From Macrostomum hystrix (taxonomy: Eukaryota; Animalia; Platyhelminthes): 64,000 nucleotides of DNA. Where the stretch lies: assembly GCA_950097015.1 (NCBI GenBank), contig CATNEN010000002.1, positions 3,348,001-3,412,000 of the forward strand, in the 5' to 3' direction. The notes under the pieces are model-generated. The model was not told the origin of the DNA and did no database searches. It worked only from the letters and a program-made list of their open reading frames with translations. Shown in pieces: positions 31,262 through 50,618 of the stretch (the first letter of the stretch is position 1; each line of letters begins with the position of its first letter). The position numbers were made by a program, and so were the translations under genes.

Positions 31262-34010
31262 GAGTGTCTACCAAATAGGCATTTTTACGAAGATGATCCG
31301 AAATACGTTGCTAAGAACCTAGACCCAGACAGGAGTAAGTGGAGACAACTCGAACAAGCCGGCGATGTGGAGAAGAATCCTGGGCAGAAGCGTAGAGAGG
31401 AGTAAGAAATGACGAAGTGCGCGGAATGTAAGGAAAAGCTTAGGATGACCCCATGGCGAGCAAGATGCAATGCGTGGCCTACCAAGCCCCGTTAAAGACT
31501 GGTAGTAGGCGCATACAGTGCACTGACTGAAGCAAAGAGAACCACCAGATGCTCTGGGGAGTCCAGGAAACAGCAGAGAAACTGTTGGGACGCGCAAACG
31601 TGGGTGTGCTAGAGTTGCACGGGCAGGTAGCCCGTGCAAGAGCCTGCCGCAGATACCCGGCGTCTCCGTCAAGACCAAGGAAAAGTGCAAACTGTGCAAA
31701 GCGATGTTCCGGACTAGATACAATCCGCTGAAGTCCCCAAGCTGCAAAGGGCTGCTGCATGCGGCTTGCTCGGGGAAAAGTAGGTACGCCAAAGCCTACG
31801 CCACCTGGATGTGCCGAGAATGCATGGACCTGGCCAGCGGAAGAACGGACAACATGATAGAGACACCGAGAAAATAGGAAGAGGGCGAAAAACAGCTCGC
31901 TAAGGATGTGGAAGTTATCGAAATCCGGCCGCGCAGACGGAGCTCGAATGGTGAGCGGAGATCGTCGCCAAGTAGGGAGTAGTAGGGAGGGAGGCTGTCG
32001 AGCAGAGTGGGAAGTCAAATGAGGCTGCCGAAAATTCGATTAAGAAAAGCGGCCAAGGAATGCAGCGACCCCTCCATGTCGCCATGCTGTGTCTGCGGGA
32101 ATAAGGTCGAAAAGGAATGGAGCGTAGTGTGCTCTGAGAGCGGAAACAGGTGCCATGTTAAGTACGCTAAACTTATAGCTACGCAACTCCGGACAGGTAG
32201 CAAGAAGAAATTGGCTACCTGGAAGTGTCCGAGGCACGAGGACGGACCAGTAGTCCGCCAAGTCGCGGAAGACTCCTTGCAGCAACCCGACGAAGAACGA
32301 CCCGATCAGATCAAGGCCGAACAGAAGTGGCATGGCGCGGAGTGCTGAGGCAGACTTGGGAATGCTCACCTCGAGTGCCATTCGTGCGGGTCAAAAGTCC
32401 ACCAAGGATGCGCTGGCAGTAGGGTGCTGTAGAAGCGGTGGAAGGAGCAGTGCGGATGGATTTGCCTACACTGCAAGAGTAGCAAGGGGGAGAGGAGGGA
32501 AGAGAAAGTGGACAGCAAGCATAAGGAGAAGACCAAGACAGGAAGGATCACCATCATACTGTGGAATTGCGATGGCTTAAGCCCCAAGATGAATAACATG
32601 GCTGCACCATGGAAAGCCGACATCATCGCGATCCAGGAGACGAAACTCCGTTCAGAGGATAAAATACCACGTATGCCGGGATACCGGACCATCGGGAAAG
32701 ACAGGGACAGGGCGCAAGCTCGCGGCGGCGGACTGGCCTTTTTCGTCAGAGAAGACCTGCCGTTTAGTATATTCGTATTGGAGACCGGGAGACCCGCGCC
32801 AGACGGCCCCAAACACCCAGGAGTCGAGCAGGACGAGCCAGGGAACAAAGGCGACCTGGAAGCTCTTGGAATCGAGATCCACTGGCCAGAAGAAATTATA
32901 CAGTGCTTCTACAACCTTTATCCGCTATGGGAAAGGGGCAGACAGGACAGGGTCCCAGAGCAGATGAAGGATCGCGGACGATGGCCAGGCTTGGTGCCTG
33001 TGGGACCTGAACGTCCACATCCCATCTTGGGACAGCAACACCGTGGAAAACATTCGACGAGAGGCCTGGGAAGAATGGATGGCCGAGCACGCCATGCGGC
33101 GCTACTCAACGACGGTAGCCACACCAGACGAGGTAGAGCAGGCCAGAGCGACAGCACGCCAGACATCTCATGCTGCAGCTCTGCGGTGTGGAAACAATGG
33201 AGCCCTACCTGGAAATGCCTCAGACAGACGGGATCCGATCACACCCCGATCATCATACAAGCCGGGCACCGCAGCAAGGAGGAGGCCGGGCCGACGAGGT
33301 GGGCATGGAACTGGCGGAAGGCGGACTGGACGGCGGCGATTATGGCGGCTGCAGAGGAGATCGACCTACAATGTGAGACTAAGGACCTGGAGAACGCCAT
33401 CAGAGAGAATATTCTGGATGCAGCCTACAAGTGGGGGGGGGACTGGTCACGGGCAGGCCGCCAGCGGTAGATATGGAGATGCCGGAGATAGCCGAGCAGA
33501 GAGATAAGGTGATGTGGTACAGAAATGACGAACACCAGGTTGAAGAAGCTCAGGAAGCAGTGGAGAGAGCGAAGGAAGAAATCCGGAACATCGAAGTGCG
33601 GAAATGGACAGAGAAACTGGCAGGAAGCACCGCGGTGAACACAATGTGGCAACTGGTGAGAAGTTGCCCCGGAAGTGCCCCAAGGGCCCCGGCTGAGGTG
33701 GTTACGCACAAGGGCCGTAGGTATAGCCCGTAGGTAGCCTAGAGAAAAGGCCACAACGTTTGCCACGGAGTACGCGGCTGTAAGCAACTACCAGATCAAG
33801 AAAAAGGACAGAGCGCTCAGAAGAAAGGTCGAACGGACGCTCAAGAGGACGCAATCAGGTCGTGACGAGGGATCTGACATTACCTGGGTGGAGGTATACA
33901 AGCACTGGACGAAATGCACGGCGGAAAAGCTCCCGGACCAAACAAATTCCACCCGAGGCTGCTCAAGGAGCTGGTCACGCTGGGTGTCAAGCCGGCCTCG
34001 CCCGCCCAAC
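31262..34010 (+). mobile_element. Degenerate APE-type non-LTR retrotransposon (I/Ingi-like): 2A-like peptide, four PHD-like fingers, APE endonuclease; breaks off at the start of RT
   Basis: QLEQAGDVEKNPGQ (31346-31387). Finger remnants KCAECKEKL..CSG..WVC*SC; KCKLCKAMF..CKGLLHAACSG..WMCREC; CCVCGNKV..CSESGNRCHVK..WKCPRH; ECHSCGSKVHQGCAG..WICLHC. APE motifs IILWNCDGL, DIIAIQETKL, RGGGLAFFV, SDHTPIII, WNWRKADW. Last recognisable motif is an RT-start PGP..FHPRLLKEL at ~33930-33975. Multiple stops and frameshifts. Confidence 0.85.
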
Positions 34011-34024
34011 CTACTGCGCCATCG

Positions 34025-34105
34025 CAAGCTATAAACGATTAACTTTCCATAACATTCCATAACTTTCCATAACTCCATAACTTTCCATCCAAAACTTTCC
34101 ATAAT
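34025..34105. repeat. Short ~10-bp tandem (AACTTTCCAT)n
   Basis: aactttccataacattccataactttccataactccataactttccat... Confidence 0.8.
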
Positions 34106-34253
34106 CATCTTATTATTATATATTATTATTATTCATTATTGTGTTACATACCTTTGTTATAATGTACGTTTTCCTGTAAATGTGACTAAGTTAAAATATT
34201 TGATTTATTGGTATAAAAAAGAGAATTGGGTCGCATCACTCAGGTCTGCGTCA

Positions 34254-34768
34254 ACTAAGTACTGAATTCACCGCCACTTGATTTCACCGCTTTTTGAAAC
34301 AAACTTTTAACAACCAAAACTATATAAAATCGATTGCGCAAGTTAATTTAGAGATGCGCCTAAACTTCTAGCACTGCGCGTTCCGTCGGGGCTGCATAAG
34401 AGCGATTTTTTGTTTTATTTTAGGCGGTGAACCGGCGGTGAACTAGATAAATGTAAATTATTTTTTGCGCGTAATTGCGCATGAAAAGCGGTGTTGCATT
34501 TTAAGTTTACACGCCTTTGCGCGATCCTTTTAGCATCTCAGAGTCGTTTTATATGCCTTTGGCTTCATGAAATTGCCTGTTAAAGTATTTTATTTAAAAC
34601 AAAGCTGGCGCGAATTCGAAATCAATACACATGCTCGCGGAAGTCAGATTGAATTGAAACATCGACTTATTGATTTATCTCGTATGTATGCTCTTAAAAG
34701 TAAAAAATACATTACAAAGTTATAATTCTAAAAATTAAGTGTTTAGTAGAAATGAGAATAGTTTCTAT
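34254..34768 (+). repeat. Left TIR (~515 bp)
   Basis: Reverse complement of 48754-49268 with only a handful of mismatches by eye. Contains repeated (TT)CACCGC / GCGGTG(AA) motifs. Confidence 0.95.
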
Positions 34769-35314
34769 ATTGTCTTGAACTAGATTTCTTGTATAGCTAT
34801 CTTATTTAAGTTAATATCAACATATGTACAATTCAATTTAAGTAGGCTATAATTCCCTATTATGGTACAAGAATAGACCTTGGGCCCTAGCATTAGTTAA
34901 TAAATAAAATTCGCATAAAAAGCATCGTTTATTAAGAATACTGCTGGCTAGAAAGGGTGAGCTGGGTATTTGTAGTATTTTGAAAATCAGCGATACATAT
35001 TTGGATTGTATAGTATAGGCCTACTGTATTTCTATGCTATGCTAGGCCTACTGTTAAGAAGGTCAGTAAATTAGAATATATCAAAAAAAGTAAAATATAT
35101 AAATATAAAACAAATATAATATACTTGAAATTAGTCATGTTTAAGTTGGGTCTACTTGTTCTTTTTGTTTTGTTTTTCTTCTTTCAAAAAATACTTTTAT
35201 CATAGCTATCCAGAACATTTTACTTTATTAAAATTGACATATTTGGAAAGATGATAGGCCTATGTGTACATTGTCATCATCTCAATCTCATCTTATATGT
35301 ACAAGCTACAACAG

Positions 35315-35470
35315 ATGTAGGCCTAGCCTTGTGATTAGAATGTAGGACTCATAACTTGAAGTTCAATTCCTGACTCACTGGAACAATTTGTGTCCTTTTG
35401 CTTATGTTTAACTCTATTTGCTATAGTTCACCTAGCTCTTAAATGGGTACCAACATTAGCTAGGGTTAGG
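35315..35470 (+). mobile_element. CORE-type SINE (family 1), degenerate copy inside the left arm of the MULE
   Basis: gaagttcaattcctgactcactggaacaatttgtgtcc...gttcacctagctcttaaatgggtacc. Confidence 0.7.
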
Positions 35471-37224
35471 TGTATTTGGCCTAAAAAATTCCATCACAAT
35501 ATAGTAATTAGTTTTTTGTTGTGAAAGGCCCAAAACATAGTTGTAATATATTTATGTTTCCAAACTGATAATACAACATGCCTGAGTACTTATTGCTCCT
35601 TAAGTAAATATTTGTTTGCATTTGTGTGATACTGCTCAGACAAGCCAAGCTTATGTTTCAGATATAACAATATCAGAATTCGAAGTGGCCAAGGTTGTAT
35701 TCAGTGCCCTGATGGTGCTAACACTGGCAGCAGTATCGCCTATGATGACGTCCTCCAGCAAGATGCCACTGTTCCTACCAAGACCATAAACTGGTTTGGA
35801 TCAGTACCCAGCCACAGCTGGTTGTGTGAACTGAATTAACTATTGACCAAGCTCATTGTATTTATTTTTTTTTCTATACTTTTTCTTACTTTTTCTAATC
35901 TCTATGGTTAATCCCTTGCTGCTTCTTTAGGGACTTATGTTGGGTATGCAGCTTTCATTCCACCATTAGGGCCTTTAGCCTGCCCGAATGGGCCTGTTAG
36001 CTGTTATGGAAAGGTGGCTTGTTTACAACTCATACCAAGTGTAACTTTTTCAACCTTGCGAGTAACCTCATTGTTGTTATTGATTCGTTGGCCACGCTGT
36101 CTAAAGAATTGAGTGTCGTTTTCTTAAGCTATACTTTATGATAAAATATACTTCAATTATAGTGCTTACGTTTTATTCCTTTGTTTTTCGCCTATCTAGC
36201 AGCTTCACGGATAATTATCTTGCTGTTTCTCCCAGACATGTTTCTTTTTTTCTTGATGTGATTAATATTGAATGGATGTAAAGTGCATTTATCAAGTAGT
36301 TGCAAATCTATATCATAATTTCTTTCAGCATCAGGGTTATTAAGAGTTCTTATGTTGACTCACATTCCAGTTTTAGCGCGAAAAGAAAAGAAAGAAGACG
36401 TACAGTTGAAGGGGCTGTCTCTGCAATTCATTTAAAGCAACAAAAGCTCTATTTTACTCATGCAAAACTTCTCCAGGATGCTTATGCCCTACTGATCTAA
36501 ATAAGAGGGGTGTACCTAAGTTCTTGTACTTTTGCATGCTGCTAGAAACTAATTAACATATCCTCGAAATCTTAGTGTGTTCGAACAGCGGCTGTTCAAA
36601 CATTCTATTCATTGTCATTCTATCACTTGGTGTAACAACGCGTTTTATTTATTTAAAAGTTTTAAAATTCCTTTAGTGAATCGATCAAATTCATAATGTG
36701 AGACTCACGTCATGCAGCAAACTGCCAAGAACTGTCAGAACTCTACTACAACCTTATATAGAAATTGGTAGTTAACCCAGCCACTGAAAACATGCATGTT
36801 AAAGCTTTCACGCGTCCAAAAGCTGGCTGGTTATTGTAATCCAGACTTGAATCAACTGCGTTCACTCATTTCACGCATTTCTTACTCTTAACTCAAGGGT
36901 CACCATTAAGTTACAAGACACTAAGATTAAGAATGCGACATGTCCCAAGAAGTAGAAAGCTTGACCATGCTATGAAGCATCGATGGAAACCCCAGATTTC
37001 CAAACCCATTAGACAGTGAAAATATTCAGCAAATAATACTGAAACTTTGCATACTTTAGCGATAAATTAACTAATTATCTCCAGCACTGAAACTGAACTG
37101 ACGGAATCCATCTGCTAGGGTTATCCCAAAAATAAGTTGCAATGAACAATAAAATCCAACAGTTGGAAGACTCTAAGCTTTGAAAGTAGTCAAAAGATTC
37201 CATATTAACTTTAAAAAATTGCCG

Positions 37225-39050
37225 TCAGGTCTGCCAGCCCGAACTCACATCGGACAGCAAAGGCAGCATCGCAGCAATCGATTGCCAGATGCCGCAGAGC
37301 TGAGGAATCACTGTTGTTGATCTGCTCCACAGAGGCAAACGTTGACCACGAGGGTGCTCCTTCATTATAAAAAAATGTAGAAGTCCGTTGCAGGTACCAA
37401 ATCGGGTGAATTGCGTGGTTGTGCCAAGACTGTTGTGACTGCTAGCCAAATGAGCTCCCCGACGATGTCGACTTGAAACCGTCTCCACGGGCCGGTTGGT
37501 AGTTCTGGGGTTGACCAGGTCACCTAGCTGGATCAGTTTAAAACGCCTTCTCAGACAGGATGCAAGTGTTTCAGTTCCTCACGAATGCTCCCACGTCGCA
37601 GTCAATGCGCAGCCACGAGACGATATCGTGGCTTCGCGCCTTGACTTTCGCCACGCCGAGAGGTAGCATTGATGCGCCTCAGTCAACAACAGGTCACGGA
37701 GAGAGACTGGGTCCGTGTCGTTCCTAGGAGTCTCGATGGGCCATCAGTTAAGCACGAACTGAACGACTCGCTGAGTTGACATGGTCATCGATGACCGCGA
37801 TGTCGTCCTGATAGTGCATAAAGCCACCTTCCAGGATCTTACCGATGACCTTCTGGAAGGCCGCCAGAGCTGAGCCGATTCCAAACGGCATTAACTTGAA
37901 TCGGTACAGGCAACATGCTAGATTAGGTGTGGAAACAGGTCAGGTTTTTAACGTCGTCACGCAGCGGCAGTTGCAGGTAGGAGTACGACGGTTGAGGGTG
38001 ATCCGCGAGAAAATAAACTCGTGGTAAACTCGGTAACTAGGTCAGCGAATGTCGGCAGTGACATAAATGGGACAACCGCCATGTTGATGCTGCGTAGGTC
38101 GATGCTGAGACGAAGCTTCCCGTCAGAGTTCCTGGCGCAGGTGAAATCGGATTGTCAGTAAGTAGCATCAACGTCAACCAGCTCGATGATGACATCCTCC
38201 TTCCACACTTCATCTCTGCGGCACTTGTTGCAAGGCGAGTGCCAGCCGGCGCACCCGCTGGGCTACCGACGGCACTCTCGGTTCCACCTTGGGGTGGTGG
38301 CAGAATCCCTTTATCTCTCTAAGACCCTTGCCTAAAGTATGGTACTTGGAAGGAATCTAAACTGACAATTTAAGTGAACGACGGAAGCTGGACGCCATCA
38401 AACTCGACCTGGCGTTGATCTCGCCAGCGACGCTCATGCTAGAGCCGTTGTAGGACAGCAGTTTCTTCTAGGACGGGCGCAGATAAACTCTAGATCCGAA
38501 GGTTCTGAGGCTTATCTGCACGCTGGGGATGGAAACTTAGGTGGCTGTGTCCAACCAATAACGGAATGCTGCGATCGTGGATCCTTATGTTGACTCTCTT
38601 TTAACCGCATTTCTTGCTCGACTCGACAGCGAAGATGCTCTGTTGGCTGAAGCTGTATATTTCGACGCGTTGCCGTGGTGCTGCTCTTGCACACCTTGGC
38701 GAAGTGGTTGAGCCTGTCGCACTTCGTGCACGCCTTCCCACGTCCCGCGCAGTGCAGATCACTGCCAGATATTAGACCGCCATTTCCACCATAGGTGCTG
38801 TCTGGATTGCCAGCGTACGTGAGCTCATTTTACAGGAGAAGTCATTCGCGCACCTTTATGGAGATTATCATGGAGTATTCCGAACTGGCAGTTCTTGGCG
38901 GCATGGCGTAGATTTGCAACGAAGGCTTGCTCGCCTTCACCGCTTCTCTGGACATATGGAAGTCAAAGAAGATGTTGTGCATTACCTTCAAGGAGCACTG
39001 CTTCCGTTAAACCTTCTCATGGTTCACTAATACCCTCGGAGACTAGTGAA
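37225..39050 (-). mobile_element. Degenerate Mag-like Ty3/Gypsy remnant (gag, RT, integrase) nested in the MULE
   Basis: Gag: GEQAFVANLRHAAKNCQFG and knuckle CAGRGKACTKCDRLNHFAKVCKS. RT: FCHHPKV..VAQRVRRL, DGKLRLSIDLRSIN, YRFKLMPFGIGSA..FQKVI, YQDDI. Integrase: LGVAKVKAR..WLRIDCDVGAFVRN*NTC and PWRRFQVDIVGEL. Confidence 0.85.
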
Positions 39051-39881
39051 AAATTCTTGGACATCGATGGCATACTTATTTTCATTGTTTAAAATGTCTT
39101 TTTAAAGGTAACCAAATGTGTGTTGCGCATGGGTTTTAATTCATGCTTTCTGTTCTTTTTGCTGCTTTCGCGCATCAATAGCACTTTATCTAAAATTCGT
39201 GGACTCTACGGAGACATCATTTTAAGCTGAAAATTTAAAATACCGCTTTTAGTTTTGAAGTGCATGGATTTATTGTTACCTAATTCATGACAATACGAGC
39301 GTGCGATGTAATATAGGAGCGTAATATTTATCAAATAAACCCTGGATTAGTCGTAATGTAACAGTATCACACCTAAAACTTGATCTACACAGTTTCAAGT
39401 CGTAGCAAAAATATAGGACTAATCATTGCATGCTCTGCATACCATCGGTCATGGTGAGATCAGCATTTCAAAGAGAGAAACGAACATAAAATGCCGCATC
39501 GGAAAACTAGGAATTAAAAAAATGTGATTTCCTATTTAACGTCAAATGTGAGTACGTATTGCGCTGTACCTTATTTAAGTGAAATGATTCTTACACAAGG
39601 AAACAACCGTAAGCCATTTTTTCAACGACACCATAATCCTCATTAGACATGAAGTAGTTTTTAGCTGCATGCAAAATTGTTAAGATAAAAATGAAAAGAA
39701 GTATCCAAGTCGACAGAAGATTGACCTGGGTGCTTAATCAAGATCAGCAAATAACTTGTTTTGCTACGGACGACGTACTATTAAAAGTATCACTTATGCA
39801 ATCAGAAAGCATAGAAAAGCCCGGCGCCTATAATTACAAGGGGTGTTCCATATGTAACATTTATGCGACCTTTCCTTTCAG

Positions 39882-42444
39882 ACATCTCCTAGTGTCCGTG
39901 ACAAGCACGTGCTGCAGGCACTGCAAATTTTGACGGAATCATCAGCATTCTCTGGCTCCGATTTTGTTACATCTGCTCCTTCAAGTTTGGCTTACAGCGC
40001 CCTCGCAAGCCAGTTAGATGCACTTTTTCCTGGACAGTATGGCGAAAGGGATTTAAAAACGATTCGATGCGACGTTCAACAGAACAGAAGAGAACTTAGG
40101 AGCAAAATCTCACTAGTCTTGTCCTGTGTGGACGAGCCGCCAGAGGAGCCTGCAGAAGCTGCTGATCTACAGCTACCAGAAAGTGATTCATATTTCAACG
40201 TCGCTGAAATCGACGCATTAAATAGTTACTGGACTGACCTTGAGCAGTCTGGCTCAGCTGAAAACGATCGTAGGAAGGCGCAGGATAATATATGCTATAA
40301 TGTAATATCAACTATTCAAACGACATATGTGAAAAGTTGCAGCCTCAGTGTAAAACGAAGCCACTTTGACAAGCACGGTGCTCGTACCGTCATTTACGTT
40401 TTAAAATGTTCTGTGGCATTATCGGAAGAATCCGGCGTTTGCCCAGGACAATGGCAAGTGCGAGTCAAAGCCTCTCGCGTATTGATAAGGTGCATCACAG
40501 AGCCCATAGACCACGATTTTAAGGCTGGAAAAGTGCGCGATAAAAGCTTGAAACGAAAAGTACAGAAACGATCGATTGCTGCGTTACAGGCCTCGGTTGC
40601 TGCATCTGCTCACGATGCTCGTGACATGCCGTCTAAAAAGACCTTAATTAACATTCGGCAGCATGAGAAGTCCAAACAAAAAATGTGCAAAGACAGTTCT
40701 ACTCACGATCTGATGCTTCGTATCGCACACTCAGAAACGCTATCAAAGTATGTGCAGTATACGCAATTTTCAGGAAATTTAACGCTTCTCGTCATCGCCT
40801 TGTCTCACCCTGAGTTGACGGCAGGCGTCTTTTATGCGATGAAGAAAGCAAAAGTTCCCATAAATCTAGCTATTGACTCAACTGGCGCATCAATTGCTAC
40901 AAGTAGCTGGCCAGGCTGTTTGCCTAAAAGAGTGTTCCACTATGCTCTTGTACTACCCTCAAAAGGTCAATCATGCTTGCAGGTTTCTTTGTTAGACGTG
41001 CTGTCGTGCCTTCATGATAAAGTTCAACTTACCAGCATTCTAGCTAAGTGGTGGCGAACTCTACAAGATGTCCCTGGCTACGGCCTTTTAAGAGTGGCAA
41101 AGGTAGTGACCGATTTCAATTGGCCTACTTTGCATGCCTTATTGCAGGTATTTAACGGTTTGAGTATTGAAGAATACCTAAATTGGTGCTACCTTGTTGG
41201 TCTGCAAGACGATAACGGACAATCAGGTGTGCCATCTTGGCTACGTGCTACGTTGAAGCAGGCACGTGAACGAACCGCTATCATGCTTGGTCGTAGCCAT
41301 ATTATGAATGAAGTTCGTAATTGGCCGGAAGTGAGGTCTGCACAGCCATCTGCCCGAGTGCTGTACCTGCAAGGCTTTGCTCTAATCGTCGCAAGCACAA
41401 CAGTCATGGAAGGGCGCGTCAGTCTGCAGAATCTACTGCATATCCTTCTTGAACGAGATGCCATGCAAGCGCTACCATACATTCAATCCGTGCGCAACCA
41501 ACAGGTGGACGACTCAATGGATCCAGTACTCTTAGAGCGTTCGGACGAAAGCAGTGATGAGGAGAAATCAAGGGCCACAATTCGTGCTTCCTCACGTTTT
41601 TACCACGAAGCACGCGAATTATTGCAGAGAGCAACTGTCTCATGCCATCAAGTTTCTATGAATGATGTTGTGATGGTTAATGCGTACATGAATGAAGCCT
41701 TGGCGAAAAGAATTGTGGACTTGTATGCATTCTTTCCTCTATTCAGTAGTATGATGGAAAATGCAGAACGCCATTTTACTCGAAGAGTGTCCCACGTAGT
41801 AGATTTCCGCAACACCGAAGGAAGTGTTGAAGTGTATCACAGAACAGTTCGAAGGGATGTACTTGGAGGCAGATCGCGAACCCTAATCGATGTCTTAACA
41901 TTATTGGAGGAGTTTACTCGAGGGCGTTTACGCTATCGGCTTATTGCTGGAAATACCGAGCTACGCTCTGCTGGAGATGTCGATTTGGATGCGTCATTGG
42001 CATCTGACGCCGAGCAAATGTCTATGCAGCGGGATTTTATTGCTGATGAAAATTCTGACTGTAGAGCTGACCCCATTTCTGTGGCTGCTACCCACCTACA
42101 TACTAATAGTCCTCACAGCACCGCTGACCCCGACGTTGAACAAGGCACTATCTCCGACACTGATCGGGATCCTGCTTGCGGGACGGGTCGCGGCACTCAC
42201 TGCGGCCCTGGTGCTGGAGCTGACTGCAACATTGGTCGTGGCGCTGACTGCGGCACTGGTGGTGGCGCTGACTGCGGCACTGGTGGCTCTGACTGCGGCA
42301 CTGGTGGTGGCGCTGACTGCGGAATTTATCAAGGCACTAGTCGCGATACTGGTCGCGGCGCTGTGAGTGGCGCTGGTCGCGGCGCTGGTCGCAGAGCTGG
42401 TCGCGGAGCTGGGCGCGGCGCTGGGCGCGGCGCTGGTAGCGGCA
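39882..42444 (+). CDS. MULE-like DDE transposase (open ~850 codons, probably preceded by a spliced 5' exon), ending in Gly-rich repeats
   Basis: LAIDSTG (D ~40875), KRVFHYALV, VVTDFNWPTLHALLQVFN (D ~41112), MLGRSH (H ~41298, the MULE C-x2-H position), RNTEGSVEVYHRTVRRDVL (E ~41829). Acceptor ttcctttcAG|ACA at 39881/39882 is in frame. The tail has 24-nt (GADCGTGG) and 12-nt (AGRG) repeats. Confidence 0.75.
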
Positions 42445-45348
42445 CCTGGTGGACCCCGGAGGTCGAGGACGCCGTGAAGAGCCGTCGGGCCGCGCGGGCC
42501 GCCGCCGCTGCCGATCCGAACGAGCGGCCGGCTTGGAACAAGGCCAGCGCAGACGCCAAGAAGATCATCGCCGACGCCAAGCGCGACAGCTGGAGGGCCT
42601 TCGCCGGCGAGGTGGCAGCGGACACAGACCACTCCAAGATCTGGAGAGTCGTTCGCTCCCTTGACGGCAGAAGCAACAACCTGCAGCGGGATGCAGCGCT
42701 CCGTGTGGGCCAGAAGCTCTACGTCCGACCAAAGGACATCGCCGAGGCTTACGCCAAGGAGTACGCCGCCGTGAGCCGCCTTCCGCAAGACCGCAGGACG
42801 CGCATCCTCCGCCGCGAGAACCACCGCAGCCGCGCCGCCGCACAAGCTGACAGCCCGGAGGCAGGAGACTTTAGCAAGCAATTCTCGTCTCGCGAGCTGG
42901 ACAGAGTCCTTCGCTCCCTCCCGGCCAGGAAAGCCCCAGGACCAGACGGCATCTGTGCCGAGCACCTGCAGCACCTCGGCCCCGCCGGTCGCCGGGCGGC
43001 TCTGCACGTGATCAACCAGTCCTGGGCAAAGGGGGAGGTCCCGTCTGCGTGGCGACGCGCCTACGTCGTGCCGATCCTGAAGAAGGGCAAGCCGGCCGAC
43101 GTGATTGGCTCCTACCGGCCGATCGCCCTGACCTCCGCCCTGGCCAAGCTGGCCGAGCACCTGGTCCAAGCGCGGCTCTACTAGTGGGCCGAGTCCCGGC
43201 AGCTGCTGCACCCGGCTCAGGCCGGCTTCCGCAAGCGGCGCTGCACCGAGGACCAGATCGCCAGGCTCACCCAGCTCATCAGTGATGGTCACCAGGCCAG
43301 CCCCGCCCGGCGGACTGTCGTCGTTCTGTTCGACTTCCGCAGGGCGTACGACACCGTCTGGAAGCAGGGCCTGCTGCACAAGCTCCACGCTGCGGGCATC
43401 CCGGCTGCCGGGGTCCGCTGGCTCAGCAGCTTCCTGGCCCACCGAAGGGCCGCCGTCAGGGTCGACGGCGCGACGAGCAGCTGGCGACTCTTCCGCGAGG
43501 GCTTACCACAGGGGAGCGTTCTTGCCCCGCTGCTCTTCGCGCTATTCATTAACGACCTGCCGGACCAGCTGCCGCCCGACTGCACGCCGCTCCTCTACGC
43601 GGACGACCTGGCCATTGCAGTGCAAGGCCTGACTGTGGAGGAGGCCGAGGCGAAAGCGCAGCGGGCCATCGATGCGACGGCCGAGTGGGCAAACAAGTGG
43701 CGGCTCCAGCTGGCGCCGAAGAAGTGCGCCGCATCCCTGTTCTCCACCACCGCAGGTGAGGCCAGCCGGGAGCTGCGGCTGCAGCTGAACGACGCCCCCC
43801 TCGCGACGGACCGCCAGCCCCGGTTTCTCGGCGTCATCCTGGACCGCCTGCTGAGCTTCACCGCGCACGCCGCCAACGTCGCAGGCCGCGCCCGCGCCCT
43901 GTGCGGCGTCCTGGCCGCGCTCTCCGGTAGCAGCTGGGGCGCCAAGCAGACCGACGTGCGCCGGCTCTACACTGCCTACGTGCGGCCGGTGCTGGAGTAC
44001 GCGGCCGGCGCCTGGATGCCGTCGGCCTGCAAGACGGCCATTGAGCAGCTGGACCGAGCCCAGCGCCTGTGCGCGCGCGTCATCACCGGGTGCCCTCGGA
44101 ACACCAGGTCGGAGGTGCTAGAACGAGAGGCCGGCCTGCCTTCGATGGCGGTCCGCGCCGAGATGCACGCCGGCCTTCTCCTCGAGCGCGCCCTCAGGCT
44201 CCCGCCCGACAACCCGCTGCTCGCCTGCGCGGCCGCCGAGGGCCCACGCCGCCGCCTCCAGAGCGCCCGAGGCTGGCGGGAAACGGCGACCAGAGTCAGC
44301 ACCGACGCGGGCCTGAGCGGCTACCCGCGCGAGCCCGTTTGCGTTGTCCCCGCGACGCCTCCCTGGGCCAACCTGGACACCGTCACCTTTGGTCTGCAGC
44401 TGTCCGCCCCCTCCTCCCGGTGCGACCCGCCTGAGGCACGGAGAGCGGCGGCTGAGCTAACGCTGGCAGGCCTGCCGCCCGCCCGCACGGCCATCTGGAC
44501 CGACGGAGCGGCAAAGGATGGCGTCTCGGCCGGCGGCAACGGCGCCCTGGTCGAGCCCGACACGGCACTGTGCGTCCCAGCCGGCCACGTGACGTCCAGC
44601 TTCCACGCTGAGCTGGTGGCCATCGCCGAGGCCCTCCAGTGGGTGTTGGCGGCACCGGACCCGGCCGAGCTGTCGCCGGTCCGCGTGTGCTCGGACTCCC
44701 TGAGTGCGCTGGCGGCGCTCGAGTCCGGCCCCGGCTCGACGGGCGTCACCACTGCCGATGCCATCTGGGCCAGCCTCTCCCACCTCGCAGCCGGAGGCGT
44801 CGCTGTCCACCTGCAGTGGGTCCCGGGCCACGCGCGCGGGCATCCCTGGCAACGAGGCGGTCGATGCCATTGCCAAGCGCGGCTCCGCGCTGCCGCAGGC
44901 TGAGGCCCACATCCCGATGGACCGCACCAGCTGTACCGCGCGGCGGCCGCCGACGCTGCGGGCACGAGCTCGCTGCCCTGGCACGCCGCCTGCACCTCGG
45001 GCCACCTGCCGCCTCCTCCGCCGACTGACCTCTCGCGGCGGCACGAGCGGCTGATCTGCCAGCTGCGCGCCGACCGCTGCCATGCCCTCCGGGGCTTCCA
45101 GGCCGCGATTGGCGCCCCGGTGGCCCCCACCTGCCGACTCTGTGGCGAGGGCGACGAGACGGCGGCCCACGTGCTCCTCGCCTGCCCCGCCCTGACCGCC
45201 CACCGCTGCCGCCTCTGGGGCCCCTGCCCGGAGCCCGCTGCGGTCTTTGAATGCTGTGCTTCCGTGCTGGCCCTGCTTGGGAAGGCGGGCATCATCTGAT
45301 GCCAGGTGCCATGGGCCCTGGCCCGCGCACGCCCGAAGAAGAAGAAGA
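42445..45348 (+). mobile_element. 5'-truncated, GC-rich I-group LINE with RT, RNase H and C-terminal CCHC finger; (GAA)n tail
   Basis: WWTPEV, KAPGPDGI, YRPIALTS, QAGFR, FDFRRAYDTVW, GLPQGSVLAPLLF, YADD (43596-43607), WTDGA, FHAELVAI, SDSLSAL, QWVPGH/GIPGNE, CRLCGEGDETAAHVLLAC. One TAG at 43182-43184, one frameshift at ~44835, stop at 45297-45299, GAAGAAGAAGAAGA at 45335-45348. Confidence 0.92.
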
Positions 45349-45544
45349 CCGCTAAGCACTTCGTCAGCATCTGTCCTGCCTTTATGCGGTACAGAATTAC
45401 TTACCTCGGGCCGAACACATGCATCCAGAAAGCGTGTAAATACGAAAGTTTCAATCTCGTTGATAGGTAGACGTAGATAGGGACCACCCTGGCCATCTCC
45501 ACGCTCATGACGGCGCGTTTAGCGGAATGGGCGGCATAAGACAG

Positions 45545-45790
45545 CCCGTGGAGACAGCTTTAAGGCGACATCGTCGGCAAATGAAGCTCATTTGGCTTGC
45601 AGCAACAACAGTCCTGGCACAACCACACAATTCACCCGATTCTGGGAAGTAGAGCCCTCGTGTTTAACGTTTGCCTCTGTGGAGCAGATCCAGAACTGTG
45701 ATTAATGAGCTCTGTGGCATCTGGCCATCCTGCAGCGGCTGCGATGCTGCCTTTGAAGTGAGTTCGGCGCTGGCAGAAAGACTTTGTGGC
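45545..45790 (+). mobile_element. Second, inverted copy of the Gypsy integrase remnant (inner end of the right arm)
   Basis: cccgtggagacagctttaaggcgacatcgtcggc...gctcatttggc...aacagtcctggcacaaccac...acgtttgcctctgtggagcagatc matches the reverse complement of 37225-37495. Confidence 0.8.
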
Positions 45791-47927
45791 ATTTTTGGAG
45801 CAAATATCATTTGACTATGCTTATAAAGTTTTAAGTCTTTACTGCTGGCTTTTATTTTTCACCGAAAATGACTTGGATGCCGATCGATCGGAGTAACGTT
45901 GAGCTTTCTACTCCTTGGGTCACATCCAAAATCTTAGTGATTTCTAGTAATGTAACTTCATGGTGACCTTTCGAGTTAAGCGCTCGAAATGCGCTATTAC
46001 TTCTGAACGCGGTTGAAACACAGCCACACTCAACACGTTGAGTCTGGAGTACAATGAAAGGCTGTCCAGCCAGTCAATGCTTTAACTGCTTTAACGGTGT
46101 CGGAGTTTACTCTATATTGTTTAACCAGTTGACTCCCAATTTCTATACCATTATAGAGATCCGACAGTTCAGCTGTATGAATTTGATCTTACATCAAATG
46201 ATAGAATTACAAACCCGCTGTTTAACTATACAAAGATCGTGAAGATATGTTAATTAGTTTCTAGCAGCCACGCAAAAGTACGAGTACAATAAATTATTGA
46301 GCCCCCCTCTTGACTCGGTCTGTAGGGCATATGCACCCAGTGGAAGTTCGGCTGAAATAGAGTTTTTTTGCTTTAAACGTGAAGACAGAGAGACCTTTTT
46401 AAATGTATGTTTTCTTTTTTAAGGAGCGCTAAACCTGGAATGGGAGTCGACAAAAGAACTCTTTGATGCTGAACGAAATGCTGATACTCGTATTGATTTG
46501 CTTTTGATTACTTAATAGTCGCATTTTACACAAATTCGGGAAAAACAGCAAGTCAACTCTATTATATCTGCTATATATGCTAAATAATAACGGAATAAAT
46601 CTAAAGCACTAGAAGTGTAGTATATTTTAAATGTCTAAAATGCCTTTTAATTTGACAGGACGACAAACAACACAATAGGTTCGGCAGTGTGGCTATTGAA
46701 GCGAGAAACACAGTTAGGTTAATGTTGAAAAATTGACTTTTGAAATGCATATGGGGGCGCTTTTATATTTGGCATGCATTGTAAACAAGCAACCTTTCCA
46801 TGACAGCCTACAGGCACATTTGGGCACTAAAAAACTAGCGAAAATGACACACCACATGCACTTGCATTCTTATGGTGAAACGAAAGCAGCATACCCCACA
46901 TGAACCCCGAAAAAAACAACAAGGGATTCACATAGGAGTTAGGATTATTTATAAAAAAAAGTAAATTACAATGTGCTTGGTAAATAGTTGTTCTGTTGAC
47001 ACAATCAGCTCTGGTTAAAGTGATCCGCAGAATAGCAAATGTCCAAACCAGTCCACAATGTCTAGGTGGGAATGGTGCTGGCCAATTACACTGTAGGCAA
47101 CACTGGCACAATCATGGCACTGAATCCAACCTAGGTCACTTTGCTATCTGCTATTGGCCATCTGAAACCTTGGATTGGTTTTTGTGAGTACTCACAAATA
47201 ATAAACAATTATTTCAAGAGTATTGGCTCTTATAGTTTGCACAAGGCAACATACAAACATTGTATAATTGTGTTTTTAAGTTTTTTTCACAAAATAAATA
47301 CAAATTTATACATGGAAATAGGCCTACTTAACTCAATTGACAAAATGTCTATAATAGTGTTGTGACAGCACTTTAAAGCCTAATTGAGGATGCCTACAAA
47401 ATTATATCAAATTGTTACTTCCAATGTTAAGTTGTAATAGTAGGCCTAGTAAATCATGTTGATGTTTGTTATATGCAAGTATTACCAAGACTGAATGGAC
47501 CTAAATGATTATAAATAATTTTATAAACTAAGAAGGTATTTTAATCAAATAGCCAACTCTGGTTATTCAATACAATTGGCCCAATACTTACAGATGAAAA
47601 GTTTATAGATAGAAATGATGACAGTATTTTTTTTAAAACAAGAAAGGCAATATAAGTCAAAAAGTGATTAGGCGCTACTTTATAATATGACTAGACCATA
47701 ATTTGTAACATACACTTGTACTTACTAACCTTAAAATTAGGCCTAGAAACCCAAGATATAGGCCCCTACCATTCAATGATGCATAGTAATATTTTTATAA
47801 GTTAATAAAAGATATTTTTCTAGGAATTCGAGAAATTAACAATTAAGAAACAATATTGTTGATATGTTTATTGTTAAGGAATTAATACTAGGCCAAGGTG
47901 CCTAGCCTAGGATTCATTTACTATTTA

Positions 47928-48682
47928 CTATTGGTTTTCAATTTCAATTTTCAACTTCAATTTCGCCCACAGGGAGGGGGCCATTGTGTGTAGCACTGTG
48001 TACCCAATTAGTAACTTCAATTTTGTCCTCAAAACTGGCTGCCCAAGTTAGGGTAAATCAGTTTCACAAAAAGTAAAATCTATTTCCTCTCTTCAGCACA
48101 GTGATTTGTGTTTGTGTCCACTCTGTGAAATACAGACTTAGTCCTTGCCATTGATCTTCGCAGAGGCCTACTGAATCCACCACAATGCAATTATAATAAT
48201 TCTGTTAAGTGTCAAGAGATTTATGGCCCTGTTAATTTATGACCCTATCGCACAAAATCACAATAAAAATTCAGCTAATTGGATACCATGGACACTTTCA
48301 CATCCAGCCACTCTTGAAGCTCGAATCTTATTGGAGCGAGCAACAATACGAGCTCTTTTTGTTATTTGTCTCCCACTTGGTGTCTTGCCTGAGACTTTCA
48401 AAATATATACTAAAAGTGCAGGCCCATCATGGGCTAAATTGACGTTTAAAGGTGGATGAAAAAAATGCAAGACGAAATAGGCCTAGGCCTAGAAGTTTTT
48501 GTGAAATTGATTTACTTTAACTTGGGCAGGCCAGTCTCAATGACAAAATTGAAGTTACTAATTGGGTACACACGATCAACCCCCTCCCTGTGGGCGAAAT
48601 TGAAGTTACTAATGCTAGCCGGAGAGCCACTGGGCGAAAAAGAAGTTACTTAGTTTGAAATAGAAGTTGAAAACCAATGGCA
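47928..48682. mobile_element. ~750-bp MITE-like insertion with ~150-bp imperfect inverted ends, in the right arm
   Basis: ttggttttcaa...ttcaatttcgcccacagggagggg...gtgtacccaattagtaacttcaattttgtc...ctgcccaagtta (47930-48075) is mirrored at 48495-48680. No TSD found. Confidence 0.6.
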
Positions 48683-48753
48683 AGAGTAACTTAGTAGAAG
48701 AAACCTACTTAAAAAATTAAAGTAGATATACAAGCGTTCAAGTTAATTAATAT

Positions 48754-49268
48754 ATGGAAACTGTTTTCATTTCTACTAAACACTTAATTTTTAGAATTAT
48801 AACTTTGTAATGTATTTTTTACTTTTAAGGGCATACATACGAGATAAATCAATAAGTCGATGTTTCAATTCAATCTGACTTTCGCGAGCATGTGTATTGA
48901 TTTCGAATTCGCGCCAGCTTTGTTTTAAATAAAATACTTTAACAGGCAATTTCATGAAGCCAAAGGCATATAAAACGACTCTGAGATGCTAAAAGGATCG
49001 CGCAAAGGCGTGTAAACTTAAAATGCAACACCGCTTTTCATGCGCAATTACGCGCAAAAAATAATTTACATTTATCTAGTTCACCGCCGGTTCACCGCCT
49101 AAAATAAAACAAAAAATCGCTCTTATGCAGCCCCGACGGAACGCGCAGTGCTAGAAATTTAGGCGCATCTCTAAATTAACTTGCGCAATCGATTTTATAT
49201 AGTTTTGGTTGTTAAAAGTTTGTTTCAAAAAGCGGTGAAATCAAGTGGCGGTGAATTCAGTACTTAGT
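48754..49268 (-). repeat. Right TIR (~515 bp)
   Basis: Reverse complement of 34254-34768. Confidence 0.95.
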
Positions 49269-50303
49269 TCTGCGTCAAATATATACATTACATGCTGCCA
49301 CTACTTTTGGATGTTCTAATAGATCTCGAGTAGCTCCTTCGCATGTTATCCTATTTTATTCAAGGTGCCCCCGTGTCTTCCCGTAATAGCAATGCTCCTA
49401 ATATAACCAAATAACCTTTGTTAGTCATCGTCAGATAAACTAGGCCTACATCATTGTTTTATAGTCCATGGTTCAAATTCATATAATAGGCCTAGGCCTA
49501 GGCCTACATTAAAAATCCATAAAATTTTTCACAGTGGATTTTATCCATAAAATCCAAGTGGATTGGCAATTTGCAAGTAGTAGAGTTAAAATCTAAGCTG
49601 CCCAGTCAAGCTAAAATATATTGGATTGATTAGATCTAATATATATAAATCCATTTTTTTATGAAGATTTTTCAGAAATATATCACTAAAATTGTATTAG
49701 AAATTAATAGTTCTATTTTATGATCCTCTATGTATAACTATTTTTCAGCTCATAAAAAAGACAAAGTGACTTATAAAATTATTATTTATATATTGTAGCT
49801 ATAACTTTGTGGCTATAAATTCACCTCTTCTGTTTATTTATGAATCAATAATCATTCTACCCTCCTACATGTAGGCAATTGGTATTGAGTAATACTTGTA
49901 ATTAAATCAGTAAATTATATCAATAGTAACACTAGGGCCTAATAGTGTATGATTGATTTTACAGATTTTATTGATATAGGCCTATCTATAGTATTATTAG
50001 TAGACTAGCAGACTAATTATAAAAACTCATATTTTGTGGTCACTACAATTATATACAAAATGTATATGTTTGGATCTATATTTCTATCAGCACAAAAATG
50101 TACATTAGGGCCTACATGCAACAGTATAAGCACATTATATTTAGTCCATGCTGTTCCCATTAAAATTTCTACACTAGCCAATGTTAGTACCAAATTCACA
50201 TCTTTGAAAAAGATTATTTAAAAAAATAGTATCGAAGAAAAAAATATTTCACTTATAATATGCATCAATTCAATTGTTTGTTTGTGTTTTACCATTATTA
50301 CAG

Positions 50304-50618
50304 TCTTGGTTTGGTGGTTCACAACAGCAGCAGCAGCGGCCGCCAGGTTCGCCAGATGAGCGGCTGCTAGTGAGCCAGCAGATGCTAGAGGTGGAGATGA
50401 TGCAGGACCTCTACAATCGAGTCATGGAGTCGTGCAACTCAAAATGTGTCCAGCCTGGCTACAATGACACAGAGCTGACTAAAGCAGAGGCAGTTTGCAT
50501 TGACAGATGCGTGGCCAAATACATGGAGCTGCATGAGGTGGTTGGCAACAAGCTGCAGCAGATCTCTCAGCAGCAGACTGAAACTGCAGCTAAGGCTGGA
50601 CCTGTGAGACCGAACTGA
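50304..50618 (+). CDS. TIMM10: Mitochondrial intermembrane-space small Tim chaperone Tim10 (initiator codon not in this exon)
   Basis: LEVEMMQDLYNRVMESCNSKCVQPGYNDTELTKAEAVCIDRCVAKY, with the twin CX3C motif. Acceptor ttaccattattacAG|TCT TGG precedes the coding sequence. Confidence 0.92.
   Translation, partial: SWFGGSQQQQQRPPGSPDERLLVSQQMLEVEMMQDLYNRVMESCNSKCVQPGYNDTELTKAEAVCIDRCVAKYMELHEVVGNKLQQISQQQTETAAKAGPVRPN

Follow-up and report, generated by a model that had tools for sequence, protein, structure and literature searches.

The window analysed here, a stretch of 64,000 nucleotides from Macrostomum hystrix, holds a mobile element of 15,015 bp (34254-49268). Exact 9-bp copies of TCTGCGTCA, read directly from the letters at 34245-34253 and 49269-49277, abut its termini, which begin ACTAAGTACTG, in agreement with the 9-bp target-site duplication (TSD) claimed by an earlier note on this DNA. 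A left arm of 3239 bp and a right arm of 3725 bp enclose an interior with a transposase gene. Runs of N were absent from the element, tandem arrays were absent from its arms (TRF), and an Rfam scan of 33000-50500 gave zero matches.

Anatomy of the arms

Near-identical terminal inverted repeats (TIRs) occupied the outermost 500 bp on the left (34254-34753, forward strand; 99-100% identity per 100-bp window) and on the right (48769-49268, reverse strand; repeat search and sliding-window identity). The two agreed at 497 of 500 positions in the sliding-window comparison, with three mismatches, and past the first 500 bp identity fell abruptly to background, bearing out the long near-identical TIRs described earlier. 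BLAST and the repeat search delimited a TIR of 555 bp at 96.6-97%. The motif TTCACCGC occurred at tip positions 14-21 and 30-37 on the forward strand and at 171-178 and 182-189 on the reverse strand; both TIRs together contain it eight times, where chance would give 1.5 copies over the whole window.

Each TIR is followed inward by a sub-terminal zone for which the opposite arm has no detectable counterpart (left, 34754-35605, by sliding window and shuffle test; right, 47215-48768). Global identity between the left zone and the corresponding right sequence was ~50%, that is, essentially unalignable, and a trace of similarity relative to shuffles (z 6) was lost once the zone was split. The left zone carries a 150-bp dispersed repeat (35324-35464), and the right zone a nested MITE (~47921-48678), which has inverted repeats of its own (I7, I11 and I14) and matches the genome at 335 or more places with 76-86% identity. 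The MITE had been proposed as the reason why the arms measure ~3.2 and ~3.7 kb; both lengths stood, and the MITE explained most of the difference, not all of it.

Inverted homology resumed further inward, between a non-coding left inner arm (35606-37492; BLAST identity 64-74%) and its right counterpart (45544-47214; repeat search, BLAST and window identity). Four blocks, all colinear and inverted, made up ~1.9 kb per arm: 35606-35718 against 47214-47106 (73%, E 1e-10), 35812-36591 against 47014-46215 (64%, E 4e-34), 36874-36961 against 45993-45902 (74%) and 37143-37492 against 45861-45544 (70%, E 8e-44). Sliding-window identity in the inner arms reached 67-82%, and in the shuffle test the inverted orientation gave z=96, the direct-orientation control lying at shuffle level. 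Colinear inverted blocks (64-82%) therefore do exist beyond the TIR, as the earlier note had it, but homology does not run straight on from it: the inverted diagonal is interrupted rather than continuous, since identity drops to background for ~0.85 kb. A coding origin of the inner arms was rejected, tblastx patches being scattered over all frames with a longest open frame of at most 69 amino acids.

The transposase gene and the interior

Between the left inner arm and the gene lies retroelement debris (37493-38312, reverse strand), recognised by translation, unconfirmed by family scan, and including a short reverse transcriptase-like frame seen by eye only (37748-37891). The native upstream region of the gene (38313-39881, forward strand) is shared at 84-95% with a relic copy on contig C7 and ends in a polypyrimidine tract and an AG acceptor (39880-39881). 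A start codon or first coding exon was not identified in the reading of the element, and the one candidate splice donor for a first exon was in the wrong phase. The exon that follows (39882-42176, forward strand) encodes a transposase core of DDE/RNase H fold, as indicated by homology, an AlphaFold model and fold matches, and a homologue in Macrostomum lignano begins at the same point as this exon after the AG acceptor.

The putative catalytic residues are D323 (40875-40877), D402 (41112-41114) and E637 (41817-41819). H464 (41298-41300) was invariant and D402 nearly invariant in the alignment of homologues, and the D/D/E and H residues were kept in an intact paralogue at 24% identity. The protein was 67% identical to an M. 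lignano hypothetical protein and had 62 remote homologues. A model built on the 63-sequence alignment reached a pLDDT of 86.6; one built on a two-sequence alignment (pLDDT 37.6) was too poor to judge the N-terminal domain. Fold neighbours of the core were ISCth4 (Z 11.4 over 241 residues, 8% identity), the P element (Z 10.9) and Hermes (Z 10.0), so that IS256, P and hAT structural scores were tied within 1.5 Z. Language-model neighbours of the core were MULEs (Mutator-like elements), and those of residues 95-235 fell in GCM, FLYWCH, FAR1 and DBD_Tnp_Mut clusters.

Sequence searches were almost silent on this protein. Pfam at E 10 gave zero matches to MULE, FLYWCH or any other transposase family, PDB yielded nothing either to the sequence itself or to a profile, and the word-index search of proteins recovered a single M. 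lignano entry, both from the one sequence and from the 41-sequence profile. Named matches were limited to M. lignano hypothetical proteins and an uncharacterised protein of the fish Melanotaenia boesemani, and cluster look-ups gave uninformative names. Sub-threshold Pfam MULE matches (E 0.002-0.0035) were obtained for 2 of 41 remote homologues. Canonical MULE-domain loci numbered at least 29 elsewhere in the genome, with none at the element in the window.

The transposase tail runs into a minisatellite of 24- and 12-bp units (42177-42443, forward strand; TRF), native to the element, as it was present in the C7 relic, and the paralogue on C1 has a repeat at the same place. Next to it lies a GC-rich (0.65-0.68) fragment of a non-LTR retrotransposon (LINE; 42451-45400, forward strand, the 3' limit being approximate) composed of a linker, a reverse transcriptase remnant (weak RVT_1) and an RNase H (Pfam RNase_H, E 2e-7); it stays in frame with the transposase to 43184. 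The window copy and its sister on contig C32 ceased to align at the 42450 junction, and the sister retains a C-terminal domain, 47% identical to the tail of a paralogue (E 1e-63), that is absent from the window copy. A deletion removed the native C-terminal domain here and fused the rest of the transposase to the nested LINE; this copy is probably defective.

Copies, concerted ends and decayed arms

The sister copy (C32:1750164-1767363) was 99.1-99.3% identical to the window element over 8.2, 3.3 and 0.47 kb. This identity spans the arms, the gene and the nested LINE; the sister has lost 48027-48800 in a deletion marked by 8-bp microhomology. It is flanked by its own 8-bp TSD, different from TCTGCGTCA; because two copies ~99% identical sit at different duplications, the whole unit moved recently, as had been proposed. 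The empty site of the window copy was sought through its flanks and not found, both flanks being unique in the assembly. A third copy is the decayed relic on C7 (6690067-6693651). The two near-identical copies form subfamily A. Subfamily B consists of four transposase-less relatives of 16-30 kb, whose arms of ~3-5 kb (3.3-4.6 kb) are filled with tandem arrays of 59-, 45- and 48-bp units and whose interiors hold only dead Gypsy-like and LINE debris. They are classic non-autonomous partners of Foldback type. Within each of the copies on C38 and C33 the two arms matched without gaps over 3.3-3.9 kb, at 99.7-99.9% identity; the arrays differed between copies. Four copies have kept both ends intact between matching flanks, and their TSDs are 9, 9, 9 and 8 bp long.

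A and B share sequence only in the outermost ~395 bp (~90% identity), and the inner arms of A showed no homology to B arms at word size 7. Within these 395 bp, 35 differences between A and B were fixed and common to all left and right arms, against only two variable sites among the four A arms. The TIRs thus evolve in concert, since the A/B substitutions occur in both arms of each subfamily. Left and right ends differed by 0.4-0.6%, not above the divergence between copies, and informative sites within A TIRs amounted to five singletons, too few to reveal individual conversion events. Of the proposal that only the outer TIR is kept homogeneous, by conversion or by selection, the homogenisation held (35 fixed differences as against two left/right polymorphisms) and selection alone fell away, as it cannot account for 497 identical positions in 500.

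The reading that best accounts for these observations, with a probability of about 0.7, is a Foldback-type cut-and-paste DNA transposon of low copy number in which the terminal ~500 bp have been homogenised and the inner arms have decayed. The ~0.85-kb zone adjoining the TIR, less similar than the inner arms beyond it, is not predicted by simple conversion outside and drift inside; extra insertions or a replacement are needed. In a competing account, which we consider unlikely, an old element with decayed arms would have taken over new ends of ~0.5-1.3 kb through recombination or faulty repair, with a related subfamily as the donor; the identity step would then be a scar left by recombination rather than the boundary of an ongoing conversion tract. 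Such a swap fits the sudden loss of identity at ~500 bp, from 99% down to background, the 0.85 kb of dissimilar sequence after it, the restriction of A/B similarity to the outer 395 bp and the missing TSD of the B copy on C39, and in Galileo exchange between ends and centres is documented together with chimeric copies without matching TSDs (PMC3573991). However, the genome search yielded no donor family for tip positions 396-500 or for the sub-terminal zones, and inner termini or an inner TSD were absent at 35606 and 47214, on which ground a nested inner element was also rejected. The 35 differences fixed in both arms of both subfamilies would moreover still demand homogenisation at some time.

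Homology to the inner arms was found in the genome only in the window element and its sister, apart from one fragment of a dispersed family. This fragment is what remains of a mariner-like element's 3' end (37117-37430, reverse strand, with a counterpart at ~45585-45861), and its translation shows a mariner-type C-terminal motif; the match is to the final ~326 bp of a 1.34-kb family whose copies are ~95% identical to each other and 72-75% identical to the arm. Both arms hold the same truncated relic and share sequence past its limit, which argues that an old inverted duplication built the inner arms, as the earlier note had suggested. Such a fragment could also have reached each arm separately, if copies of one set of dispersed repeats had inserted on both flanks of the gene in opposed orientations, and the two arm fragments, at 70%, are no closer to each other than to the dispersed copies. 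Yet the blocks are colinear and lie at mirrored distances, the 1-kb middle block (35606-36656) occurs elsewhere in the genome only in the sister copy, and the mariner fragments share their truncation, ~60 bp past the family limit and the neighbouring block; independent insertion is very improbable and largely refuted. Long palindromes may be assembled wrongly, but an artefact of this sort, like a segmental inverted duplication, can be practically dismissed given a second copy on another contig with different flanks and its own TSD, three relatives with exact 9-bp TSDs and the lack of N runs.

For the homogenised Foldback-type element, a working scheme can be proposed. The transposase most likely binds the repeated motifs in the terminal 400-500 bp, and would excise the whole unit and insert it elsewhere with a staggered cut of 9 bp. 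In each arm, the inner 1.9 kb is then passenger DNA, derived from an old inverted duplication that already bore the mariner fragment and since decayed freely to ~70% identity. The terminal ~500 bp may be kept identical by gene conversion or by one end serving repeatedly as template for the other, with the homogenised tract probably stopping at the heterologous zone next to the TIR. A more speculative variant, which we regard as rather improbable, takes the 500-bp step to show how far a transposition-coupled copying process extends, each end being rewritten at excision or repair from the other end or from the inverted end of a sister copy. If so, the terminal half-kilobase would be regenerated at every cycle in this transposase clade and inward sequence would be free to decay; the same copying, unimpeded by heterology, would explain the multi-kilobase B arms that are near-identical in two copies.

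The locus offers a clean natural example of the evolution of Foldback-type transposon ends, with a terminal module evolving in concert (35 substitutions in both ends) and sequence half a kilobase inward, including the arm-duplicated mariner relic, drifted to ~70%. It links an element of autonomous type to giant partners that lack a transposase. It also draws attention to a clade of DDE transposases unrecognised by current domain libraries, so that flatworm elements of this type will be missed or mis-split by standard annotation pipelines.

Comparison with known systems

Mutator-like elements generate TSDs of 8-10 bp, typically 9 bp, and are marked by Pfam PF10551 or a MuDR-type DDE domain, with a C/DxxH-type histidine after the second D and an N-terminal zinc-finger DNA-binding domain of WRKY/GCM1 fold; IS256 is their accepted prokaryotic relative. 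The P superfamily has 7-8 bp TSDs and a P-type transposase with a THAP domain, and hAT elements have 8-bp TSDs and a C-terminal hAT dimerisation domain. Pfam at E 10 gave zero matches here to THAP, Tnp_P_element or hAT families. Membership of hAT is disfavoured by an 8-bp TSD in only one of four copies and the absent family match, and membership of the P superfamily by 9-bp TSDs in three of four copies and the absence of THAP. The earlier assignment to MULE/Foldback agrees with the TSD sizes; the transposase gave no Pfam MULE match, because of which Mutator membership, suggested by TSD size, fold neighbours and language-model features, is likely but unproven. As part of the favoured reading and at the same confidence, the model-based comparisons point to a divergent DDE enzyme of the IS256/MULE-P-hAT structural group.

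The best structural match to the catalytic core was IS256 (ISCth4, PDB 6xg8; Z 11.4), a bacterial insertion sequence without long arms and with 8% sequence identity to the transposase here. Galileo, a Drosophila member of the P superfamily, resembles the present element in its long foldback-like TIRs, which lengthen by inverted duplication of internal sequence, and in its chimeric copies and end exchange between subfamilies (PMC3573991). The modelled likeness to P element transposase (Z 10.9, near the top) stays at fold level, and Galileo differs by its 7-bp TSDs, against 9 bp in three of four copies here, and by its THAP-type P transposase.

Phantom, a subclass of Mutator (Marquez & Pritham 2010, as summarised in PMC6446971 and PMC3169594), occurs in animal hosts including flatworms and combines 8-10 bp TSDs with TIRs of 18-613 bp, or with foldback-like or sub-terminal repeats, some members having a minisatellite after the ORF. 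Its transposases are defined by FLYWCH and Pfam MULE domains, neither of which was detected here. Rehavkus, an outgroup of MULEs reported from arthropods and annelids only (Dupeyron et al. 2019, PMC6446971), is similar, as judged from its published description, in its 9-bp TSD, TIRs of up to 400 bp, single transposase ORF and excessive divergence for canonical MULE models, and in having a minisatellite downstream of the transposase core, ahead of the 3' end or TIR (42177-42443 in the window). The Rehavkus PHD finger was absent here by Pfam, in a copy whose native tail is missing, and present in remote homologues P0030 and P0032.

Close parallels are the Foldback elements of the Mutator superfamily (Drosophila FB/FB-NOF; Tm1 of Meloidogyne, PMC3169594; Tetris of D. 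virilis, PMC4079207), which share TSDs of 8-10 bp, mostly 9 bp. Foldback arms are long and composite, with an outer domain, tandem arrays and an inner domain (PMC3169594, PMC4079207), and many copies are transposase-less, of low copy number and variable size, which is exactly the build of subfamily B. Unlike these, the window element has arms without tandem arrays that are near-identical for 500 bp only, and the family, at 15-30 kb, is far larger than Tm1 or Tetris. The element belongs to the known Foldback/Mutator-like kind and represents no new kind of mobile element; its two-tier ends are instructive as a variant, though an ordinary one.

Arm structure and the origin of its two tiers

The element spanned 34254-49268 (15,015 bp), its termini starting with ACTAAGTACTG and with TCTGCGTCA on either flank; BLAST, alignment and direct reading reproduced the target-site duplication (TSD), arm lengths (3239 and 3725 bp) and similarity blocks reported in an earlier note. 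Repeat finding and BLAST gave TIRs of 555 bp (96.6-97%). Global alignment of the arms in 100-bp windows, with the nested MITE taken out, displayed 99-100% identity over 34254-34753 (3 mismatches in 500), about 50% over 34754-35640, 67-77% over 35643-36656, about 48% over 36657-36855 and 72-82% over 36856-37440. In local alignments against shuffles, the middle block reached z=96 inverted and z=-0.5 direct, and the zone adjoining the TIR showed only a trace (z 6) that was gone once the zone was split. Inverted homology beyond the TIR was therefore present in the inner blocks, but its diagonal was interrupted for ~0.85 kb directly after the TIR.

GC content was 0.65-0.68 in nested retroelement DNA (42001-46000) and 0.34 in the transposon arms (34001-36000, 46001-50000), and GC skew was strong in the 50-54 kb region. 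A loose pattern search returned repeated 16-mers like the TIR tip at 51130-52684 and 29760-29816 (ACTAAAGACTGAAGTG four times, ACATAGTACTGACTAC three times, 28-bp spacing), probably part of unrelated tandem repeats.

With a probability of roughly 0.7, the element would transpose by cut-and-paste through a terminal module with TTCACCGC motifs, the terminal ~500 bp evolving in concert and, further in, the older DNA of the duplicated arms decaying. The motif occurred four times per element end, the ends holding 8 of its 11 occurrences in the window (1.5 expected). A one-off end swap would fit the abrupt identity step and the unalignable zone well, and chimeras of this kind are documented for Galileo (PMC3573991); we consider it possible but rather unlikely.

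The proposed decay of duplicated DNA bears on the inner arms (35606-37492 and 45544-47214). A genome search with 34808-37520 matched the 1-kb middle block only to the window element and its sister copy on contig C32. The innermost block (37117-37430) matched the final ~326 bp of a mariner-like family with a length of 1.34 kb; copies of this family shared about 95% identity among themselves and 72-75% with the inner arm, and both inner arms translated into a mariner-type C-terminal motif. Both arms held the same truncated mariner fragment, ~60 bp past the family's homology limit (88-91%) and the block neighbouring the fragment, so that these were duplicated together and not inserted separately. 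This bears out the old inverted duplication suggested earlier, and independent repeat insertions as the source of the inner blocks are effectively excluded. Neither inner termini nor a TSD were found at 35606 and 47214. Inner arms gave only short tblastx patches scattered over all frames, with longest open frames of 69 and 94 aa, and are thus non-coding; they are old passenger DNA.

The 1.34-kb mariner-like family is itself young (L045-L059, e.g., C39:18841735-18843077; copies about 95% identical). The family of the MITE nested at 47921-48678 has at least 335 genomic matches, and a ~51-bp piece of the MITE (query 645-714) was amplified into tandem arrays at several loci (e.g., C39:2160000-2162600, C8:2143100-2143600, C2:5675180-5675550), a MITE-to-satellite transition.

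Mobility, relatives and homogenised ends

Searching the genome (220 Mb, 42 contigs) with the TIR returned 18 places. The sister copy (C32:1750164-1767363, opposite orientation), which forms subfamily A with the window element, was 99.13% identical to it over 8,199 bp, 99.28% over 3,310 bp and 99.57% over 470 bp. Its flanks were unlike those of the window element and its own TSD was 8 bp (TAATATGA), hence, as had been proposed, the element moved as a whole unit, and its nested insertions moved with it; no empty insertion site was found in the genome. Its inner arms had diverged in the same pattern, which makes the two-tier build older than the last transposition; an artefact is effectively excluded.

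Two further loci carried pieces of the element. A rearranged TIR fragment at C29:3174252-3174461 (210 bp, 98-100% identity), with tip positions 1-30 followed by positions 203-29 inverted, possibly arose through aberrant repair. A decayed third copy of the transposase region (C7:6690067-6694204; DNA 84-87% identical) is interrupted by stops and lacks 41071-41987; it shows that the minisatellite and the upstream region, from 38313 on, belong natively to the element.

Four larger relatives (subfamily B), on C30 (21,463 bp), C38 (20,274 bp), C39 (29,513 bp) and C33 (15,823 bp, truncated at one end), resembled the window element only in the outermost ~395 bp of their ends (90-92%). Exact 9-bp TSDs flanked two of them (ATTGAGGAT, CAATTATCG), and no matching TSD was found at the ends of the C39 copy. 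Their arms (3.3-4.6 kb) held tandem arrays of 59, 45 and 48 bp, and their centres, 99.7-99.9% identical from copy to copy, held no frames other than Gypsy-like ones (protease, RT, RNase H, integrase) and LINE ones (RT, RNase H). Nothing in them resembled the window element's transposase; they are classic non-autonomous Foldback elements, and their helper gene would be the one carried by the window element and its C32 sister. The C39 copy (C39:8820434-8849946, 29.5 kb), with intact ends and arms differing more than those of other copies, looks like a recombinant of two insertions, as in chimeric Galileo copies.

Alignment of the first 395 bp of four A and seven B arms gave 346 columns without variation, 35 fixed A/B differences and only 2 sites variable among the four A arms; in both subfamilies, each of the 35 was present in left and right arms alike. 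Within-copy left/right differences in A (3 and 2 in 469 bp) did not exceed those between copies. Had the two ends evolved separately after the A/B split, left and right would now differ about as much as A and B do; the ends have therefore been homogenised, presumably by conversion or by copying of one end from the other. The homogeneous outer TIR of the earlier note is thereby upheld; selection, its alternative cause, cannot as purifying selection alone account for this, since the end module took 10% change between subfamilies. The gap-free arms of the C38 (99.74% over 3.9 kb) and C33 (99.88% over 3.3 kb) copies, whose array lengths differed between copies despite near-identical arms within each, point in the same direction.

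The transposase gene and its affinities

A polypyrimidine tract and AG (39880-39881) preceded the transposase frame exactly at the start of a Macrostomum lignano hypothetical protein (67% identical over 91% of length, which suggests a Macrostomum-type flatworm as host), so that a first exon or trans-spliced start is absent from the gene model. Alignment with the C32 copy stopped at 42450 and resumed at 44724. Between these points C32 had 5.3 kb in which the frame ran on for another 363 aa, a stretch 47% identical (E 1e-63) to the tail of a C1 paralogue; a weak endonuclease-domain match lay further on. The window copy had 2.3 kb of LINE sequence there (linker, RT and RNase H). In the simplest reading, a common ancestor with the full gene and a nested LINE underwent a different, overlapping internal deletion in each copy. 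The in-frame transposase-LINE fusion of the window copy is a deletion scar, and the native C-terminal domain, kept in C32, is gone from this copy. The two copies hold different, non-overlapping pieces of the LINE (42444-43184 and 43620-44903; L019:8910-9998).

The frame (39909-43184) matched no Pfam family at E 10, PHD, FLYWCH and MULE domains included, and no PDB sequence. Exhaustive HMMER searching gave 62 relatives at E<=0.001, only one below 1e-30; some remote homologues carried PHD fingers, UCH or Ulp1 protease domains, and two had sub-threshold MULE matches. A confident model of residues 263-700 (pLDDT 86.6, pTM 0.87) was built from a 63-sequence alignment. VIA-align placed it next to the transposases ISCth4 of the IS256 family (Z 11.4, 241 residues aligned), P element (Z 10.9) and Hermes (Z 10.0), and matched its RNase H core alone to retroviral integrases and Mos1; Foldseek returned RAG1, P element, ISCth4 and Transib. 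The M. lignano protein and an intact paralogue of 889 aa (only 24% identical) both retained D323, D402, E637 and H464. Language-model neighbours, taken as leads only, were MULE clusters when the whole protein was compared and, for residues 95-235, clusters of GCM, FLYWCH, FAR1 and DBD_Tnp_Mut.

Intact ORFs of 889-947 aa from a distant branch of the same clade (24-27% identity, no Pfam match) occurred in several copies (L042:463-3132 (-), C11:3136149-3137720, C1:23303394, C1:15661044). Residues 32-262 of a Melanotaenia boesemani protein (P0061, 788 aa) matched the family's helical insertion region (E 7e-4, computed against 1.8 billion proteins), and the protein also has a PWWP3A/B C-terminal domain (PF20886, E 1e-19), a hint that this transposase clade may have given rise to part of the PWWP3A/B-like proteins of vertebrates.

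The Mutator-like class given in the earlier note agrees with the TSD size, but no MULE domain was found, and the IS256-family fold match scored close to those of P element and Hermes; the transposase is best described as a likely but unproven divergent member of the MULE/IS256-like group. Phantom, compared by description only, has 8-10 bp TSDs and foldback-like ends (PMC6446971; PMC3169594), and the window transposase differs from it in lacking a FLYWCH or MULE domain. Rehavkus, likewise compared by description only, combines a 9-bp TSD and TIRs of at most 400 bp with a PHD finger, and a minisatellite precedes its 3' TIR (PMC6446971). The window transposase is unlike it in having no PHD finger, but the element shares the TSD size and a minisatellite (42177-42443), and its transposase is possibly Rehavkus-like.
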